Shown: piece by piece, positions 4,069 to 43,069 of the stretch
How positions within the stretch are numbered: the stretch's first letter is position 1
How the letters are laid out: each line of letters opens with the position of its first letter
Assembly (NCBI RefSeq): GCF_016432865.1
Contig: NC_067400.1
Location: forward strand, 615,660,001-615,724,000
DNA: 64,000 nucleotides
Source of the DNA: Antechinus flavipes
Taxonomy: Eukaryota
Direction of reading: 5' to 3'
The notes under the pieces: generated by a model
What the model was told of the DNA's origin: nothing
The model's input: the letters and a program-made list of their open reading frames with translations, nothing else
The model's database searches: none
Made by a program: the position numbers and the translations under genes

Positions 4069-7000
4069 ATGGTAACGGGGATCACGCGGGCAAGAATCCT
4101 TGGGCCATGTCAGTCTTCTCTGACTCCTCTATTCCCCCCCCCCCGCACCTCCCCCCAGGCCGGGTCCGTTGGTTCTGACCGCGTCCTGGAGTAACGGAGT
4201 CGGGATGGACCACGGAGGAGTGGAAGGGGGAAACAGAGAAGGCCTTCAGTGTGGGGGAGGGGCGGGCGCGGAGAACCAGCTATCTGGCCGGGAGCTTGAG
4301 ACCTGCAAAACACCTGGAGGGGGAGGGGTGTTTGAGACCAGGAAGACACCGGGAGGGGGGGGGGGTGTTTGAGACCAGGAAGACACCGGGAGGGGGGGGG
4401 GGTGTTTGGGATTTAGGGACGTTGAAGATCCCGGGAGGGGGAAGGGACTTTGGGACTTAGAAGACACCTGGAGGGGGAGGAGGAGCTTGAGTTTTGGGGA
4501 CCCAGAAGACACCGGGAGGGGGAGGAAGAACTTGGGACTTTGACTTAGAAGGCACCGGTAGGGGGAGGGGGAGCTTGGGTCTTTGGGACCTAGAGAGCCC
4601 TTAGGGAGGGAGGGGGATCATGGGTCTCAGGGACCTAGAAGGCCCCTGGAAGGGGAGGGGAAGGGAGCTGGCAACCTTGAGGGGAGGGCGGGGAACTTAG
4701 AAAGTGGGACCCTGAATAGCTGAGGAGGAAGTGTAGAATTTGGAGACATGAAGGGGGAGTTTAAGCTGGGACCCTGAAAGGAAGAGAAGGGAGCGTAGAA
4801 GCCTCCAGCCCGGGAGGGCCACGAAGAGCTTTAGGAGCTGTTGAGCCCAGGGAGAGGGTGGGCTCTGGGGCCTGCCGCTAAGAAGAGCCCAGCCCCCTCC
4901 CCGGCCCTTGGGGCTCTTCCTCACTTCCCCAGGGCTGGGCTAGTTCCTGGCCATGGTAGGAAGCAGTTCCCCTGAGCTCAGCAGCAGGAGGTTGAAGCCA
5001 GTGTCCCCCGGGCAGCTGAGCTGGTGACTCAGACCCAGCAATTACAGAGCAGCAGAAATCCGCCCCCAGCTCAGAGCCCCGAAGCTTGAGGGGGGCGTCC
5101 CCCCAAGTCTCACGCCGCCTCCCTTCCAGGCTTTGCCCGGGCCTCCCCCTCTCCTCTCTGCTCATGGCTTCCTGTCCTGTCTCTTGTCAGATCCGATTCA
5201 TTCTCATCCAGAACCGAGCGGGCAAGACCCGCCTGGCCAAGTGGTACATGCAGTTTGACGATGATGAGAAGCAGAAGCTGATTGAGGAGGTCCACGCTGT
5301 TGTCACAGTCCGAGACGCTAAGCACACCAACTTTGTGGAGGTGAACGCGCCCCCCCCCCCCGCCCCCACCCCACAGCCTCCTCTTCTGGAAGGATGTTGA
5401 GAAGGCAGATGGGGGGAGGGGGTACAGGAAGTTTAATCCAGCCTCAGTTTCCTCATCTGTAAAATGGGAATTGAATAGGGCCTGCCTCCCAGGGTAGTAT
5501 CAAATGAGATATTTGTAAAATGTTTTGCTGACACAAAAGCTTCCTATGTGAGTGTTAGTTCTTGTGTTAAAAGCTGGCACAGAGGGCAGGGAGGTGGCAC
5601 AGTGGATAGAGCATCAGCCCAGAGTCGGGAGGATCTGAGTTCAAGTGTAACTCCAGATACTTGACACTTATGAGCTGTGTGACCCTGGACGGCTCACCGA
5701 ACTCCGACTGCCTCGGGAAAAAAGCCGCTCCGTATTGGGGTCATCGCCCTGAGTGCCAGTAGGGAAGGCCTGGGCAGCGCAGAAGACTCGGGGGACACTG
5801 CCTCGGTCTGTAAGGGGTGCGTGGAGGAAGCTTGACCTTAAGGGGATCTTGCTGACTGGCAGGTCTGGGTTCTGTGGAGGAAAACCGTCTCCATGTGCAC
5901 GCTGTCCCAGCTGGAATGGGCTCCCCAGTGGCAGATGCTGGAGGGGTCCCGAACCACCACGAGTCAACCCTTCTTTCAGCGAGGATTTATTACGGCCACT
6001 GGGGCTGTCCCCAGGCGCAGGGGCTGGGCCCGGTGGAGAGCCCCGAGATTGGGTCTGCCTGGATGTGCCCCTCCCGCCTCGGCTGTGAAACACTTCCCAC
6101 GAGTGGGTCAGCTGGGCCTTCTGTGGCCTGCGGGAGCGAGGCTTCCTGCGGGCAGAGCCTGGGCGCCTTTGGGGCCCTCCTGTGCCCGGCACTGGCTCAG
6201 TGCCAGCCCCGAACCTGCCCTATTTTATCGGGCTGTGCTGTGGAGGTGGGTTACAAGAGTGAGCCTCCGGCAGCTTAACTTCTCCCGAGGCGCTCACGGC
6301 CTTGGGTGCATTCGTAGGAGATGCTGGTATAAGGGCACTTTAGCCAAGACAGTCTCCCCAGCTGGGGGGGGGGGGGGGCTTGGGGGGCCTGAGGAGCTGT
6401 CCAGGCCATGGACAGAAGTGAAGTCTCATTAGGAGGATAAGGACGGGGGAGGGAGCAGGGCAGGGTCAGAGAGCAGTGCGGGACCCCGCGCTGCCCCTCT
6501 GGCCACCTGGGAGCTTGGGCTCTGCCTCCTGGGCCTCCCATCCATCTGTCCCCCAGGCTTCTTGCCCTGCCCCTCCCACCTGGAGCGCCTCGCTGCAGTT
6601 ACCAGGTGGGCCACAAGGTGGCGGTGCTCCTACAGCGAGCCCTGGGCAGGGAGGGGGAGACAGGAGGAGGGATGGAGGTGAGAGAAGAGGAGAGAGGAAC
6701 CATGGTCCTTTCCTAGCACTGAACCCGAGGGTGCCGTGGGACGGGGAAGCCTTTCTCCTGCTCTGCCGTGGGACCCTGGCCCCCACTCTGAGCCCGGGGC
6801 CGTGCAAAGGGCCGGTCAGACCTGCTGTCCTTTGGAGCCTCCCGGGGCTGTCTGCCTGCTTCTGTCTCTCCCCGCCCCCCCCCCTTTCCCTCTATCTCCT
6901 CTCTGTCTGTTCCCTCCGTTTCTTCTCTCTGACTCTTCCCCTTCTCTGTCTTCCCTCTCCCCTTCTCTCCATCTCTGCCCCTTGGCCCCAGTGACCGCCC

Positions 7001-33500: not shown

Positions 33501-36500
33501 TGTCTTTTTTTATAGGAATATCTTTCCAGATAACCTTGTGTCGGCTGCCTTCCGCTCTGTAAGTCTTAAGGGTTGAGGGAATGGAGGGGAGGGGAGTGGG
33601 AGGGCAAAGAGTGGGCTCAGCAAATAATCTCCTTTTCTCCCCGATTCCTTTCACCCCAGTATTCCACTGAGTACGAGCTGAATAACTCCAACATGACCTT
33701 GATGAAGGTAATGGGGGGTGCTGGTATCTCCCCTCTCTTATTCTCTGTATCTACTTGTTTTTTCTCCTTCCTCTCCCTTCTCTTCTCTCCTTCTTTCCCT
33801 CTCCTTTTCCCCTTCCCCCCTCTCCTTTCTCCTATTTCGCTCTTTCCCCTCCCTTTTTTCTCCTCTTCCTCATTTCCTCCCTTTCCCTTCTTCCTCTCTC
33901 TCCTTCCTCTTTTCTTTCTCTTCTTCCCTTTTCCCCCTTCCTTTCATCCTTTTCTTCTTCCTCTCTTCCACCTCCCCTCTTTGTCACTTTTCTCTCCGTT
34001 TTCCTCCTTCCTTTCTCCCTTCTCTTTTTTCCCTTTCCCCCTTCATCCTCTTTTCTTTTCTTTTCTCTTCTCCTTTCCCCCTCTCCTTTCTCCTCTTTCT
34101 GGGACTTTTCTCTCCCTTTTTTCTCCTTCCCCCTCTCTCTCCCTTTTCTTTTCTCTTTCCCTTCCTCCCCCCTCTCCTTCCTTTCTCTCTCCCTGTCCTT
34201 TCCTTCCTCTTTTGTCTCTCCTTCCTCTTTTTTCTCCTTTCTCTTTTTTCCCTCCCTCTCCTTCATCCTCTTTTTTCCCTTCCTCCTTTCCTTCCCTCTC
34301 CCCCTCTCCTTTCTCCTCTTTCTGGGACTTTTCTCTCCCTTTTTTCTCCTTCCCCCTCTCTCTCCCTTTTCTTTTCTCTTTCCCTTCCTCCCCCCTCTCC
34401 TTCCTTTCTCTCTCCCTGTCCTTTCCTTCCTCTTTTGTCTCTCCTTCCTCTTTTTTCTCCTTTCTCTTTTTTCCTTCCCTCTCCTTCATCCTCTTTTTTC
34501 CCTTCCTCCTTTTCTTCCCTCTCCCCCTCTCCTTTCTCTTTGTCACTTTTTTCTTCCCCTTTCTCTCTTTCCTCTTTACCTCCTTCCCCCTCTCTTTCTC
34601 TCTTCTTTTCTTTTGTACTTTCTTTCTCCCTTCTCTCCTTCCATTTTCTCTGCCTCCATCCCCTCCTTCTTCTTCCCCCTCCCCCCTCTGTCCTTCCCTT
34701 CTTCCCTCTTTCCCTCTCTTTTCTTCCCCCCTCCCCCACTCCCATCAGTTGACTTTCCAGTTCTTTTCACTTTCTTCTCGTTCAGTCGGTCTTGGACTGG
34801 GCTTCCCAGTGACTGTAAGGAAAGCAGAGCAAGGCAAGCGGGAAGAGGGTCTTTTGGAAGGGAGTTGATGGAAAAGAAGCGTGCCATTCCTTGTCAGGTT
34901 GGGAAAGGCCCAGCGGTAGTGGGGGGCCAAGGCCCCTTCCGGTCCACGTGGGCAGGCCCTTGCGCCTTCTCTTTCTGTCCTCCTCGGACCCAAGCTCGTG
35001 CCTGGCTCCGACTGAGGATGGGCCTTTCCAGCCGCCGGCCCTCTCTGCAGCCTGGAGGAGGCTCCGCTTTCGCCACGGGGCCTTTCTGGGCTCGGCCCGG
35101 GACGGGGGACACGGAGGCGTTTGGGGGCGCACGAGTCTAGCCCAAGCCCTGGCTGTTTTGTGGACTCGCGGCCGTCGGCCCAGTTGCTGTTCCTTCTGCT
35201 GAAGCGGCCACAGTTTCCCCCGTGCTTGGAAACGCGGCTCGCGCCCTCCCCCACGGAGTCACCTCGGGGCGCACTCGCCCTGTGGTCGGTTGAATTTGGT
35301 ACTTCCCGGGTCTGCCCCTGAACGTCCCTCGTCTGTAAGATAGGAACGAGAGGGCCCACCCGGGGTGGAGGCAGCGAGATGCTGGCCGTGACCGCGCGCT
35401 CCCACAAGCCCGGGCCCTCCTGGCCGCCGCGCGCCGCGCACTAAAGCTGCAAACGGGCCTTTGCTTGGCCTCCATTTTTCCCGCCCTAGGTCCCGGTTGG
35501 CCGGGAGGTGGAAGGGATGAACATTCTGGGGCTGGTGGTGTTCGCCATGGTGCTCGGGGTCGCCCTCCGGAAGATGGGCGCAGAAGGGGAGCTGCTCATC
35601 CGCTTCTTCAACTCCTTCAACGAGGCCACGATGATCATGGTGTCCTGGATCATGTGGTAGGCGCGGGGAGCGGGGTGCCCGAATCACGTGGCATGGTGTG
35701 GGGGCGGGGCCTCTCGGATCACGTGGCAGGGTGGGGGCGGGGCCTCCTGAAGGCCGGGGGCCCTTGCTGGGGGGGGGGGGGGGCGGAGAGAGGCCGAGGA
35801 GTGGGCCCTCTCGGAGAAGGGGCTGCTTCATCCCTCCCCACAGGTACGCCCCCGTGGGCATCATGTTCCTGATTGCGGGCAAGATCGTGGAGATGGAGGA
35901 CGTGGGCCAGCTCTTTGCCAACCTGGGCAAGTACGTGTGCTGCTGCATCCTGGGGCACATCATCCACGGGCTGGTGGTGCTGCCCCTCATCTACTTCGTC
36001 ATCACGCGCAAGAACCCTTACCGCTTCCTGTGGGGCATCGTGCCGGCCCTGGCCACCGCCTTCGGGACCTCCTCCAGGTACAGGAAGCGGCGCCCTTTTC
36101 CTGTTCCCCCCGGGCTGCCCAGGTGCTCTGGAACCACCTCCCTCCAACCCCGAACCTTCCGCCCGAAGGGCCGCATCTCTCCAGGCCTTGGTCAGCTGCT
36201 GGGGAAAGGCGAAGAGGCCGGACTCGGCCCCGCCTCCCAGCGCGTCCTCTGGACTGGGGGTGGGGCGGCGGGCGGGCTGGGCCGGAGCAGAACCGGGCTG
36301 GGCCGGACCGCCGGGACCCACTCCGGTCCCCTTGTTGTCTCCAGCTCGGCCACGCTCCCGCTGATGATGGAGTGTGTAGAGGAGAGAAACGGGGTCTCCA
36401 AACACATCAGCCGGTTCATCCTGCCCATCGGGGCCACGGTCAACATGGACGGCGCCGCCCTCTTCCAGTGTGTGGCCGCCGTCTTTATTGCCCAGATGAA

Positions 36501-37989: not shown

Positions 37990-39486
37990 TCACCCGCTGC
38001 CTGCCAGGCTCTTGAGGGCGGGGTTGGGGTACTCGGGGTTCTCGATGGCGCCGGGCCCGAACTTGAGCTCCAGGAAGCGGCGGTAGTTGTTGGGAGCCTG
38101 GGCCAAGAAGCCCGCGAACTGCAGGGGCACCAGCGGGTGGAGGAAGTGCTCGGGGAACTCCACGTCCTGCCGGTGGTCGAGCCACGTGTCCTTGGTCATG
38201 ACGCCGTTGCGGGGGTAGAAGGGCCACAGGTCCACGTGCAGGTGGTTGGTCTCGCTGTACTGGACGCGGAAGAAGTCTCCCTCCACGGCCTTCTCCCACA
38301 CGAAGCCCCGCTCGTCCACCACCGAGCCGGCCTCGGCCCCCCGCAGCTGCTCGCAGTTGGCCACGTCCTCCAGGTAGATGCCCAGGTCCACATCGTAGTC
38401 CCAGGGGATGATGTCGCCGTGGCGCACGGCTCCCAGCAGGCTGCCGCCCTCCAGCCAGTAGCGCACGCGGGCGGCCTCCAGCACGCCCACCACGTGGCGC
38501 GCCGTCTCGCGCAGGGCCTGCAGGCAGCAGGGCGGCGTCCAGCGGCCCTCGTACAGGTAGGAGGGGGTGTCGCCCACCACCGTGTCAAAGCACCTGGCCG
38601 TCTCCTTGCCGCAGCCAAACCACTCCTGCCGGCCGCCCTCCCAGCTGACCAGCCGCATGTCCAGCGTCCGCAGCAGCGCCTCCCGCCGGGCGCGCCCCTC
38701 CTTCTCCGCCTTCCAGCGGGCGTGGGCCGTGGCCAAGGGGGGCTGCCGGGCGGGGGCGAAGGGCAGGTCCAGGAGGCGCACCGACCACCCGCGGACCGAG
38801 GTCTGCAGGAAGAGGCCGGTGCTCATGGGCCGGGCCAGGGGGGCCGAGAGGTTGAAGAGGTCGCGGGTGCGGACCACTACCACCACCTCCCCATCCAGCG
38901 CGTCGCAGAAGGGCGGGTCCGGGGCCGGCCCGTAGCTGGCTGTCCACTCGCGCACGTTCACCTCCAGCGCCAGGCAGTGGGGGGGGCTCGCGGTGGCCAC
39001 GGGGGCGGCCACCAGGCGGGCGTGGGTGTTCCTCAGCTCCTCTACCATGCGCTGGAGCTGCCCGGGGGTCTCTGCCCGCGTGCCATCGGGCACCAGGGCC
39101 ACGAACTCCGTGTCCACGTAGGTCTCGGGCTGCGAGGCGGCCGCCGGCCGATCCAGGGAGGGCCGGAGCAGGGCCAGCCGCACGTTGGGGACGGCCGGCA
39201 GGGCCAGGGGCGGGTAGGGGAGCGTGTCGGCCGCCACCACGATGGGCTGGCTGGGGTCGAGGTGCAGGAAGGAGGCCACCACCTCGGGCACCGCGTTGTC
39301 AAAGGCTTCGAACTCTCGGATGAGGACGGTGACGCGGGGGTCGGGGGCCGAGTGGGCGAGGCGGGGGGGCCGGACTGCCCGCCCGCCCCGCCGACGCTGC
39401 TGCTGCAGCCGGGACACGTAGAAGAAGACGAGGAGGTTGAGAACAATGGCGGCCGCCAGCGCGACCTGGCATCGGGTGAGACGCAT
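37990..39486 (-). CDS. FKRP: Ribitol-5-phosphate transferase FKRP (fukutin-related protein), 498 aa, single coding exon (acceptor opens at 39527)
   Basis: MRLTRCQ start with a type II TM anchor. Zn-finger cysteines (WFGC..ETARC...TPPCC), nucleotidyltransferase motif [23 protein letters not shown] (DxD) and C-terminal IENPEYPNP. The ORF-track 550-aa version extends into the intron. Confidence 0.98.
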
Positions 39487-40204: not shown

Positions 40205-40452
40205 TCCTGGGGGGCCGGCGCTCCCGGAGGAGGGGCCGGCGCTGCCGTGGGAGGGGCCGGGATCCCGGAGGAGGGGCCGGCGCTCCCGGGGGAGGGGCCG
40301 GCGCTGCAGTGGGAGGGGCCGGCACTCCCGGGGGAGGGGCAGGAGCTCCCGGGGGAGGGGCCGGCGCTGCAGTGGGAGGGGCCGGCACTCCCGGGGGAGG
40401 GGCAGGAGCTCCCGGGGGAGGGGCCGGCGCTCCAGGAGGAGGGCCGGCTCGC
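40205..40452 (+). repeat. 21-bp G-rich minisatellite (~12 copies) with a 63-bp higher-order unit, in the last FKRP intron
   Basis: Variants of ggaggggccggcgctcccggg. The trimer ...gctgcagtg / ...gcactcccggg / ...caggagctcccggg is repeated twice. Confidence 0.9.
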
Positions 40453-41246
40453 TGTTGGCAGCCTGGGTTCTCTGCGCCTTCTCTCCAGCCGTGCCCAGAC
40501 TGGCCCTAGCAGCCTCAGCTAGCCCAAGGAAGCTTTCTCGTCTCCGCCCTCGGCCCCGGAAAAACCCCGACCGGAGCAAACAACCTCCTTTCCAGCCCTC
40601 TCGTTCTGCCGAGCCCGGCCTGTCCCAGGACAGAAGCATTTAGGCCTCGCGCCAGGGCGCAGGCTCCTCTCCCCGCTACCCATGGGCTAACCCCTCTAAT
40701 CCTGGGGCTCTGAGCCCCTAGATAGCGCCCTGGGATCACGGAGTCCTATTATTTTACTGAGAGGGGAAGGATCCTGGGTAAGTTGCCCGAACAGGAGAGC
40801 AGCCTCCCCTCTGTGAACTCCTCCCAAAGGTCTGCCCCCCTGGGAGCAAGATCCTGGGCTGGGGGGGAGGTAGGATGGGGGGGCCCTGAGAGGGGTCTGG
40901 CCCAGCTCCGGGCCTCTCGGGAAATTCGGTCTAGGAGGGAGACGAGACGGACACAGACAACTACCATACCAGTGGACCGCGGGATGGAGCGGGGACATTA
41001 GACGTCATCTCCAAGGCCCTAGCTCTGACCCTGACTTCCTGAGTGCCCTTAGGAAAAGTCCCTTCCTTTCTCTGGGCCTCAGTTTCCCCGTCTGTAAAAG
41101 GGATGTTGTGGTTCTTTGAAGGTCTAGGATTCTGAGAAATGAGGGTGGGCATCGTGGTAAAGGGGAAGTGGCCTACCCCAGATCCCACTCCAGCTCAGTT
41201 TCTATTCTAGTCCAGCAGGCCCAAGATTGGGGGTCCTGGAGCTTAC

Positions 41247-41297: not shown

Positions 41298-41582
41298 CTG
41301 AAGAATTAGGAAGGGAAAAAAAGCCTGAATTAGATGCGATTTGGGGACCCCTATCCTCAGGTCTCCTATCTCCTCAGGTATACCCCAATGAAAGGGGGGC
41401 CGCCCCCTTGAAAGGGACAGGGCTTTTTCTGCCTGGCTCAGTCGATGGGGGAAAGGAATGACTTGACCTCTCCTTAAAGGAAGAGAGTAAACACTAGTAA
41501 CTAGGAGTTCCTAGTTACTCCTTTCCCCTTTGGCATCAGTTTAGAATTAGGAAAGGGGTGAGTGGAAAAGAGGGAGCCGGAA

Positions 41583-42354
41583 GTAACCATAGCAACCTGC
41601 CTTCCCCTCCGAATTGCAAACCCATAAGCTCCCATCCCTGAGTCGGTCTGGACACTTCTCTTCGGAGAAGAGCCTATTACCACAGCAACCATCCTTCCTA
41701 ATCGGGATCTCTTCCCAATCCTCTCCCCAGCTTGTTATCCATGTATAGTTGGGAGGGGGGTCCATGGCAATCACCCTTTCTTTCTCTGGGTATTAGCTCA
41801 CCGGGGTCTAGGTGTGGTACTAGGCCTGGATGGACTCAGCAGATGTCTGGGAAGGGGCAAGATTAAGGGGACCATGGTAACAGCTCGAAGGTGGTTCCCA
41901 TGGCAACTGGCCTGGGAAGGCCATTGATCCTGGCCCAGGGTATCCTAAAATTCTGGGGAGAGGAGAGAATAAGGTAAGGGTTTGAAGCCCAAAGTATTGC
42001 CATGGCAAACAACCAGGCTCAGGATGCAGGGTGGGATAGGCTGGGGTTGGAGAAGAGCCTCCCTGAGGCCAGCAGGATTGCTATGGCAACGGTGGGGGGG
42101 AGAGGGAGAAAGGGATCCAGGATTGGCAATTTGTAGAACCCAGGGTGGGCAGGATAGAGGTGTAATGTGAAGGGTCATAGTTGCTATAGCAACCGCGGGG
42201 ATCCAGGAGACAACGTGCAGACTGGTTCCCCGTTTCTATAGCAACCATTTAAGGATGGGGAGAAAGAGCTCTAAGGAGGGGCTAGAACGGGAGGGGGCCA
42301 CGGAGAGGTGGGCTGGATTCAAGATTGGGAAGGCCTATATGTTGCTACAGTAAC
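41583..42354. promoter_or_regulatory. Homotypic cluster of RFX X-box motifs (about 9)
   Basis: GTAACCATAGCAAC 41583, ATTACCACAGCAAC 41676, GGGACCATGGTAAC 41868, GTTCCCATGGCAAC 41894, ATTGCCATGGCAAA 41996, ATTGCTATGGCAAC 42077, GTTGCTATAGCAAC 42180, GTTTCTATAGCAAC 42232, GTTGCTACAGTAAC 42341. Confidence 0.8.
41802..41846 (-). other. FKRP: Candidate FKRP non-coding 5'UTR exon (45 nt)
   Basis: On the minus strand: acceptor atcttgccccttcccAG and donor CCG|GTGAGC. Inferred from splice signals only. Confidence 0.55.
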
Positions 42355-42399
42355 CGGGGCGAGGGGCGGAGCCAGGAGCTTAGACCGGCTGGGATGCCG

Positions 42400-42667
42400 G
42401 GTAGGAGGCTGAGGGGAGGGGTGTCAAAGGGCTAGGACCAAGGGCAGCCCTCCCGGCGCGCGGCCGCCGCCCTGCGCGCCTCCCTCAGGGGCTAAAAGCG
42501 CGCGTGCGCCGGCTGGCACGCGGCGGTAGGGAGCGAGGCTCCTCCCCCCTCCCTCATCCCCGCGGGCTCGAGCGCGCGTGCGCGCGTGCAACCGCCGTCC
42601 GCGAGGGAGGCGCGCGGGGCAGGCGGCGGCCCGCGAGGGCGCGCGCGCGCTCCAGCCGCCGGCCTCC
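42400..42667 (+). promoter_or_regulatory. STRN4 proximal promoter/5'UTR in the shared STRN4-FKRP CpG island
   Basis: NRF1-like GCGCGTGCGC at 42500-42509 and again at about 42573-42590, a GC box (ggggcggag) at about 42363 and dense CpG. Confidence 0.65.
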
Positions 42668-43069
42668 ATGATGGAGGAGCGAGCGGCCCCCGCCGCCGCC
42701 GCCGCCGCCGCCGCAGCAGCCGCCGCCGCCGCCGCCGCCGCGACCGCCCCCGCCTGCCGCCCGCCGGCCCCCAGCCCCGCCAAGGGCAGCGGGGGCGGCG
42801 GGGGCGGGGCCGGCGGGGGTAGCCCCGGGGCGGGCCCCGAGCCGCTGAGCCTGCCCGGCATCCTGCACTTCATCCAGCACGAGTGGGCGCGCTTCGAGGC
42901 GGAGAAGGCGCGCTGGGAGGCCGAGCGGGCCGAGCTGCAGGTGAGCCGCCGCCGCCGCCCCACCTCCCCCCGGCCCGGGCCGCCGCCGCCCCCGCCCCAG
43001 CCGGTCCAGGACCCGCCCCCGCCCGGCCCGACCCGCCCCCCATCGCTGCCCGAGCCCCGGGCCCCTCAC

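Follow-up and report, generated by a model that had tools for sequence, protein, structure and literature searches.

The window analyzed here, i.e., the whole stretch of 64,000 nucleotides taken from the Antechinus assembly GCA_016432865.2 (chromosome record CM028219.1), carries SLC1A5, FKRP and STRN4, with an array of RFX X-boxes lying between the latter two genes and occupying positions -1086 to -315 relative to the STRN4 ATG. The main features of the locus are as follows:

~30.5-37 kb, + strand: SLC1A5
37993-39486, - strand: FKRP coding sequence, single exon, 498 aa, recognized by its ORF and by the domains PF22921 (FKRP_N) and PF04991 (LicD)
41583-42354, no strand assigned: X-box array
42363-42520, no strand assigned: GC box at 42363, then a strongly conserved core-promoter block with an NRF1-like GCGCGTGCGC at 42500; the CpG island begins here
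42669-42940, + strand: coding part of STRN4 exon 1, reading MMEER...AELQ from the ATG at 42669 and followed by a GTGAGC donor

The Striatin Pfam domain is present in the STRN4 gene called at the orthologous loci (see below). The array itself lies in CpG-poor DNA (54% GC, CpG observed/expected 0.24) adjoining a CpG island (83% GC, CpG observed/expected 0.96). Since a GC box follows the most proximal X-box at about 10 bp and the conserved NRF1-like block at about 150 bp, the array abuts the core promoter.

Several other sequence features accompany these genes. The region between the FKRP ATG and the array includes a GC-rich minisatellite (40211-40448) with 3.8 copies of a 63-bp unit, itself made of three 21-bp subunits, whose ORFs on both strands read GEGPALP-type repeats, and a stretch at 41055-41104 that to the eye resembles the core of a MIR SINE. 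Rfam gave nothing but sub-threshold chance matches for the region from 41105 onward. Within STRN4 exon 1, a GCC repeat (42686-42766) corresponds to a poly-alanine run that varies in length among dasyurids and is clearly shorter in Sarcophilus. The SLC1A5 gene region contains about 1.5 kb of C/T-rich low-complexity DNA (33573-35140), in which long ORFs read Ser/Phe/Leu/Pro on one strand and Glu/Lys/Gly/Arg on the opposite one.

X-boxes were searched with the pattern GTTRCYNNRGYAAC, which has a 2-nt spacer, leaves the two central positions unconstrained and is stricter than the general RFX X-box definition of two inverted half-sites (GTNRCC-N(0-3)-RGYAAC), to which the array sites also conform. 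With ≤1 mismatch, this pattern has seven matches in the 64-kb window, all seven of them inside the 772 bp from 41583 to 42354, compared with a mean of 1.2 and a maximum of 4 per 64 kb in dinucleotide shuffles, none of which (0/100) reached seven. A rough Poisson estimate from the shuffle rate puts the occurrence of seven such sites per 800 bp anywhere in a 3-Gb genome at ~1e-9. The array thus holds more sites of one motif than chance provides, as a homotypic cluster does. When ≤2 mismatches are allowed, nine sites are recovered within the 772 bp, in agreement with the nine X-box matches that a sequence-only reading of this DNA had reported; the two 14-mers that it quoted are found where it placed them (GTTGCTATAGCAAC at 42180 and GTTCCCATGGCAAC at 41894), and its estimate that the array starts ~310 bp upstream of the STRN4 ATG fits a proximal site ending 315 bp before 42669. 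Cross-species alignment added a half-site and a site with a 3-nt spacer, so that the array, weaker sites included, comprises nine full X-boxes, one half-site and one 3-nt-spacer site. These are listed here, together with a site found only in Dromiciops (strand is not assigned to any of them):

41487-41501: distal X-box-like outlier with a 3-nt spacer, GTAAAC-ACT-AGTAAC, weak in Antechinus
41583-41596: X-box A, GTAACCATAGCAAC, 1 mismatch, from the pattern scan
41676-41689: X-box B, ATTACCACAGCAAC, 1 mismatch, from the pattern scan
41758-41771: half-site C', ..CCATGGCAAT, from the cross-species alignment
41868-41881: X-box E, GGGACCATGGTAAC, 2 mismatches, from the pattern scan, 26 bp before F
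41894-41907: X-box F, GTTCCCATGGCAAC, 1 mismatch, one alignment column block in 6/6 therians
41996-42009: X-box G, ATTGCCATGGCAAA, 2 mismatches, matched in the alignment by perfect sites of Onychomys and Erinaceus
42077-42090: X-box H, ATTGCTATGGCAAC, 1 mismatch, present in 6/6 therians
42180-42193: X-box I, GTTGCTATAGCAAC, a perfect palindrome, present in 6/6 therians
42232-42245: X-box J, GTTTCTATAGCAAC, 1 mismatch, 52 bp after I, present in 4/4 marsupials and decayed in placentals
42341-42354: X-box L, GTTGCTACAGTAAC, 0 mismatches, the proximal site, ending 315 bp before the STRN4 ATG
6940-6953 of the Dromiciops locus (L004): X-box K, Dromiciops-only, matching site I in 20/21 bases, including 7 bases of the 3' flank

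Orthologues were found with the FKRP protein in Sarcophilus harrisii, Sminthopsis crassicaudata, Dromiciops gliroides, Onychomys torridus, Erinaceus europaeus and platypus, and 10 kb on each side of the genes were compared; the sample is without didelphids, diprotodonts or human (the Monodelphis, Macrotis, Vombatus, Petaurus and Gracilinanus loci are not included). In all six of these other mammals, STRN4 exon 1 stands head to head with FKRP. The similarity of the window to the Sarcophilus and Sminthopsis sequences marks its source as a dasyurid marsupial. Between -1500 and -250 relative to the STRN4 ATG, 2-nt-spacer sites with ≤1 mismatch number as follows:

Antechinus: 7 sites
Sarcophilus: 8 sites
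Sminthopsis: 7 sites
Dromiciops: 10 sites, 6 perfect
Onychomys (rodent): 6 sites, 3 perfect
Erinaceus (hedgehog): 6 sites, 2 perfect

In the five other therians, the array is found between 300 and 1300 bp ahead of the STRN4 ATG, and no spacer-2 site with ≤1 mismatch occurs outside it in any of the six therian 21.5-kb loci, each of which would be expected to contain 0.24-0.65 sites. The largest shuffled clusters held 2-3 sites, with at most 3 per 1250-bp stretch in 200 shuffles, versus the 6-10 observed per therian locus. Platypus has one perfect X-box at -340, near the position of the marsupial proximal site, a half-site 72 bp beyond it and, at -2050, another perfect site. When the six therian arrays were aligned with MAFFT, no fewer than six X-boxes (B, D, F, G, H and I) fell into shared columns. 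Marsupials and placentals split ~160 million years ago, and the presence of the array at the orthologous place in both clades implies, given the established phylogeny, that the array predates this split. The mapping of individual proximal sites is less clear: both clades own a 52-bp pair, MAFFT places the placental pair on G-H and not on the marsupial I-J, and a one-to-one correspondence of these sites between marsupials and placentals is ambiguous.

The histories of the single sites differ. X-box A has the same sequence in Sarcophilus and Dromiciops, has decayed in Sminthopsis and was not retained in either placental. X-box B is perfect (GTTACCACAGCAAC) in the other three marsupials and aligns with an Onychomys X-box. 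Half-site C' keeps the word TGGCAAT in 4/4 marsupials and is aligned with placental ..TAGTAAC sites. X-box D, which reads GATACTATAGCAAC in Sarcophilus and GTAACCATAGCAAC in both placentals, is missing from Antechinus through a 27-bp deletion at ~41835 (between 41760 and 41868). The E-F pair is kept at 26 bp in 4/4 marsupials, with X-box E itself being marsupial-only. Likewise, the proximal X-box L is present in 4/4 marsupials, at -313 to -334 of the STRN4 ATG, and is marsupial-only in the therian alignment. The distal outlier at 41487-41501 has counterparts in Sminthopsis and Dromiciops, at the aligned place and with one mismatch to GTTRCY-NNN-RGYAAC.

Some of the DNA around these sites has features of its own. 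Adjoining the 3-nt-spacer X-box is an Antechinus-specific inverted repeat (41496-41523) with arms of ~12 nt (AGTAACTAGGA.. / ..TCCTAGTTACT), the second of which is missing in the other three marsupials. A good splice-donor word on the + strand, GGG|GTGAGT (41553-41566), lies in a block that is conserved in 4/4 marsupials, with GTAAGT in Sminthopsis, and not conserved in placentals; it could belong to an upstream STRN4 exon or to a structure on the FKRP strand. The most conserved marsupial spacer block (42110-42152), not kept in placentals, contains GGATTGGCAAT, a CCAAT word on the FKRP strand that overlaps an X-box-like half-site.

Selective constraint is concentrated on the X-boxes. In the four-marsupial alignment, 15 of the 122 ungapped X-box columns are variable (12%), versus 190 of 599 spacer columns (32%; Fisher p=5e-6), i.e., X-box columns change ~2.6 times less often, and one third of the marsupial X-box changes merely exchange A and G where the motif has its degenerate R. 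Gapped columns follow the same trend (13% in X-boxes versus 30% in spacers). The placental pair agrees, with an Onychomys-Erinaceus identity of 84% in X-box columns and 64% in spacers (p=0.001). Hence, in marsupials and in the placental pair alike, the sites are more constrained than the DNA between them, as in homotypic clusters. Between Antechinus and Dromiciops, identity falls from 92% in the X-boxes to 75% in the spacers, ~62% in the FKRP 5' region and ~41% in a proxy from STRN4 intron 1 that is effectively unalignable, a gradient indicating that the whole module is constrained in marsupials, with the X-boxes constrained most. Across Theria, little aligns other than the X-boxes. The composition of the sites tells the same story as palindromic RFX matrices (JASPAR/HOMER), which have the same AT center and flanks as the high-affinity ..GCC AT GGC.. 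palindrome: among 50 sites of the six therians, position 7 is A in 46 and position 8 is T in 44, a bias that was not imposed by the search because the pattern left the central dinucleotide free, and the base directly 3' of the X-box is C in 34. The 50 therian sites thus resemble high-affinity palindromes also at the center and flanks, which were unconstrained.

The arrangement of the sites is far looser than the sites themselves. Center-to-center spacings range from 26 to 192 bp (median 96) and differ between lineages, and no helical phasing was seen in Rayleigh tests at 10-11 bp (p=0.1-0.7). A fixed-geometry enhanceosome was therefore rejected. A module of the MHC class II SXY type was rejected as well, since no CRE (TGACG/CGTCA) is present in 41450-42400, and the three CCAAT words within the array stand at irregular distances, with none of them kept in placentals. 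The number of sites is conserved while their spacing drifts and single sites come and go, a combination expected of a homotypic cluster of the billboard type.

Could the array instead be the neutrally decaying remnant of an old minisatellite or transposon in which X-box-like words arose by chance? Some traces are compatible with such an origin. Neighboring sites share short flanks (families D2-D4), which leaves room for a very old duplication, and spacer-to-spacer local alignments score slightly above shuffled sequence (mean 16.1 versus 13.4), with 2/21 pairs above the 99th percentile of shuffles. The match of Dromiciops site K to site I looks like the product of a local duplication or gene conversion, and indicates that local duplication can add sites. 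However, TRF found no tandem array in 41300-42400, and the 10-nt flanks of the sites are 24-32% identical, which is the chance level. With spacers this close to shuffled controls, a tandem repeat or minisatellite was rejected, and the initial view that the spacers are unrelated and the array is not a tandem repeat holds. Moreover, the array has kept its place since the divergence of marsupials and placentals, with constraint specific to the sites, and an ancient duplication is in any case compatible with a present function. A neutral remnant is thus extremely improbable. The objection that the cluster might not be conserved, which had been foreseen from the start, is likewise rejected by its orthologous position in four marsupials and two placentals and by the slower change of its X-boxes relative to spacers.

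The sequence-only reading had taken the array to be an unusually large homotypic RFX module and not a repeat, a proposal strongly supported by the orthologous arrays in four marsupials and two placentals and by their slowly evolving X-boxes. That reading further suggested a cilia-, brain- or testis-specific STRN4 output and an alternative FKRP start bypassing a uORF, ideas that these comparisons neither favor nor disfavor. Because both clades have kept the array, it can be read as an unusually large RFX control element that is almost certainly functional. We put at roughly 70% the probability that RFX dimers bind it and that it serves the adjoining promoter as one cis-regulatory module. The best reading, as judged from comparative sequence, is that of a therian-wide homotypic RFX module on a CpG-island shore that would have been selected for the number of its sites over their spacing. 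Under this model, a cluster of predicted high-affinity RFX dimer sites occupies the CpG-poor shore of the CpG island that contains the start of STRN4 and probably also that of FKRP. Six or more sites would already have been present in the therian ancestor, and a single promoter X-box, as is still found in platypus, may represent the older state. Later selection would have maintained the sites and their number while spacer lengths drifted, with single sites lost (D in Antechinus) or gained (K in Dromiciops), as on a billboard of sites. At a median spacing of 96 bp, many RFX dimers could keep ~0.8 kb occupied and probably nucleosome-free, and the transcription of the adjacent promoter would then respond steeply to the level of RFX.

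Which gene would respond is suggested by distance. The array lies 300-485 bp from the STRN4 ATG in all species and 1.9 to 4.9 kb from that of FKRP, and the near-constancy of the former distance makes STRN4 the most likely target. If FKRP starts in or beyond the shared CpG island, this argument fails to separate the two genes. The array could also be an intronic enhancer or alternative promoter of FKRP, or serve a more distant gene, and not act on STRN4. Its position, with the shared CpG island on one side and the FKRP coding exon on the other, would suit such a role, as would the fact that in marsupials the whole 1 kb, spacers included, is better conserved than the neighboring non-coding DNA. 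Nevertheless, the 2.6-fold variation in the distance to the FKRP ATG, set against the nearly fixed distance to that of STRN4, makes this quite unlikely. It is slightly easier to imagine, though still unlikely, that an RFX-bound array works mainly as a repressor or damper, holding brain-enriched STRN4, or a read-through FKRP transcript, at low levels outside particular cell types. Repression through several X-boxes is documented for human MAP1A and the yeast RNR genes (PMC3245922), and the array, like the MAP1A sites, would be downstream of the start of FKRP if that start lies within the CpG island or past it; the sequence, however, does not tell activation from repression. Finally, the sites could be recognized by some factor that is not an RFX protein, or could work through the structure of the DNA, a suggestion prompted by some site ends (CAACTG or CAACGG) that resemble MYB sites. 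These MYB-like ends are not conserved, the CRE and a regular CCAAT partner are absent, and what has been conserved is the complete 14-bp palindrome of the X-box, including both half-sites and the AT center, all of which renders this alternative very improbable.

Returning to the RFX module as preferred here, a bolder version of it can be formulated, although tentatively and with less than even odds. The array would be a landing pad for RFX throughout Theria, larger than any other conserved homotypic RFX array so far noted in vertebrates, with selection acting on the number of its sites and not on their geometry. It could serve as a sensor of RFX dosage, or as a boundary separating the divergent, overlapping transcription units of STRN4 and FKRP. 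If true, the RFX program would extend to a gene for a STRIPAK scaffold or to one for dystroglycan glycosylation. RFX factors are regulators of ciliogenesis, spermiogenesis, hearing and MHC class II expression as well as of a p53-linked tumor-suppressor network, and the targets described for them have one or two X-boxes. Mutations of FKRP are found in limb-girdle muscular dystrophy and dystroglycanopathy, and STRN4 encodes a STRIPAK/Hippo scaffold. The array thus stands at the start of two medically relevant genes. With six to eleven strong sites and an age exceeding that of the marsupial-placental split, it also constitutes a natural experiment on site multiplicity, bearing on response steepness, occupancy and nucleosome exclusion. 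Public ChIP tracks very probably already show a peak at the array.

We know of no homotypic RFX cluster described in vertebrates, and none was found in the literature searched, whose coverage is incomplete. Within the same incomplete coverage, STRN4 or FKRP appeared together with RFX only in coincidental co-mentions, and no paper was found on a joint FKRP/STRN4 promoter; both genes are absent from the supplements of one human RFX target survey, as far as these were accessible. Searches for X-box clusters or arrays returned nothing on vertebrates beyond a C. elegans two-site study that also reviews yeast and MAP1A. To this extent, the literature agrees with the original statement that no description of the array was known.

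In itself, the array is a homotypic binding-site cluster that is built from a well-known motif and stands out by its size and age, and its relation to known systems can be set out accordingly. The closest relatives are the promoter X-boxes of RFX/DAF-19 targets (ciliary, spermatid and other genes), which share with the array the same conserved 14-bp inverted repeat with an AT center, a location within a few hundred bp of the gene start and the proximity of GC-box-type promoter elements. However, the cases described have one or two sites, whereas the STRN4 array has 6-11 full sites over 0.5-1 kb and, unlike those targets, neither STRN4 nor FKRP is recognized as an RFX or cilia gene in the searched literature.

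More than one X-box on a gene is known from other cases. Two are found in C. elegans F25B4.2, two others lie downstream of the start in exon 1 of human MAP1A, which is repressed via RFX1/RFX3, and in yeast Crt1 combines strong and weak X-boxes to repress RNR2/3/4 (PMC3245922). The MAP1A and Crt1 cases resemble the array in having several X-boxes, both strong and weak, on one gene, and the location of the MAP1A sites downstream of the start is one that the array may share with respect to FKRP. They differ in number, with two sites in MAP1A and a strong/weak combination in yeast against six to eleven in the STRN4 array. With the S-X-X2-Y module of MHC class II genes, which is bound by RFX5/RFXAP/RFXANK, CREB and NF-Y, the array has in common the recognition of X-boxes by the RFX family; yet that module joins a half-site-type X1 to X2/CRE and Y/CCAAT elements at fixed spacing, whereas the array consists of full palindromes without CRE and with only sporadic CCAAT words. 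In its organization, the array is comparable to homotypic clusters such as the Bicoid sites at hunchback, which likewise gather many sites for one factor, maintain their number over their spacing and undergo site turnover.
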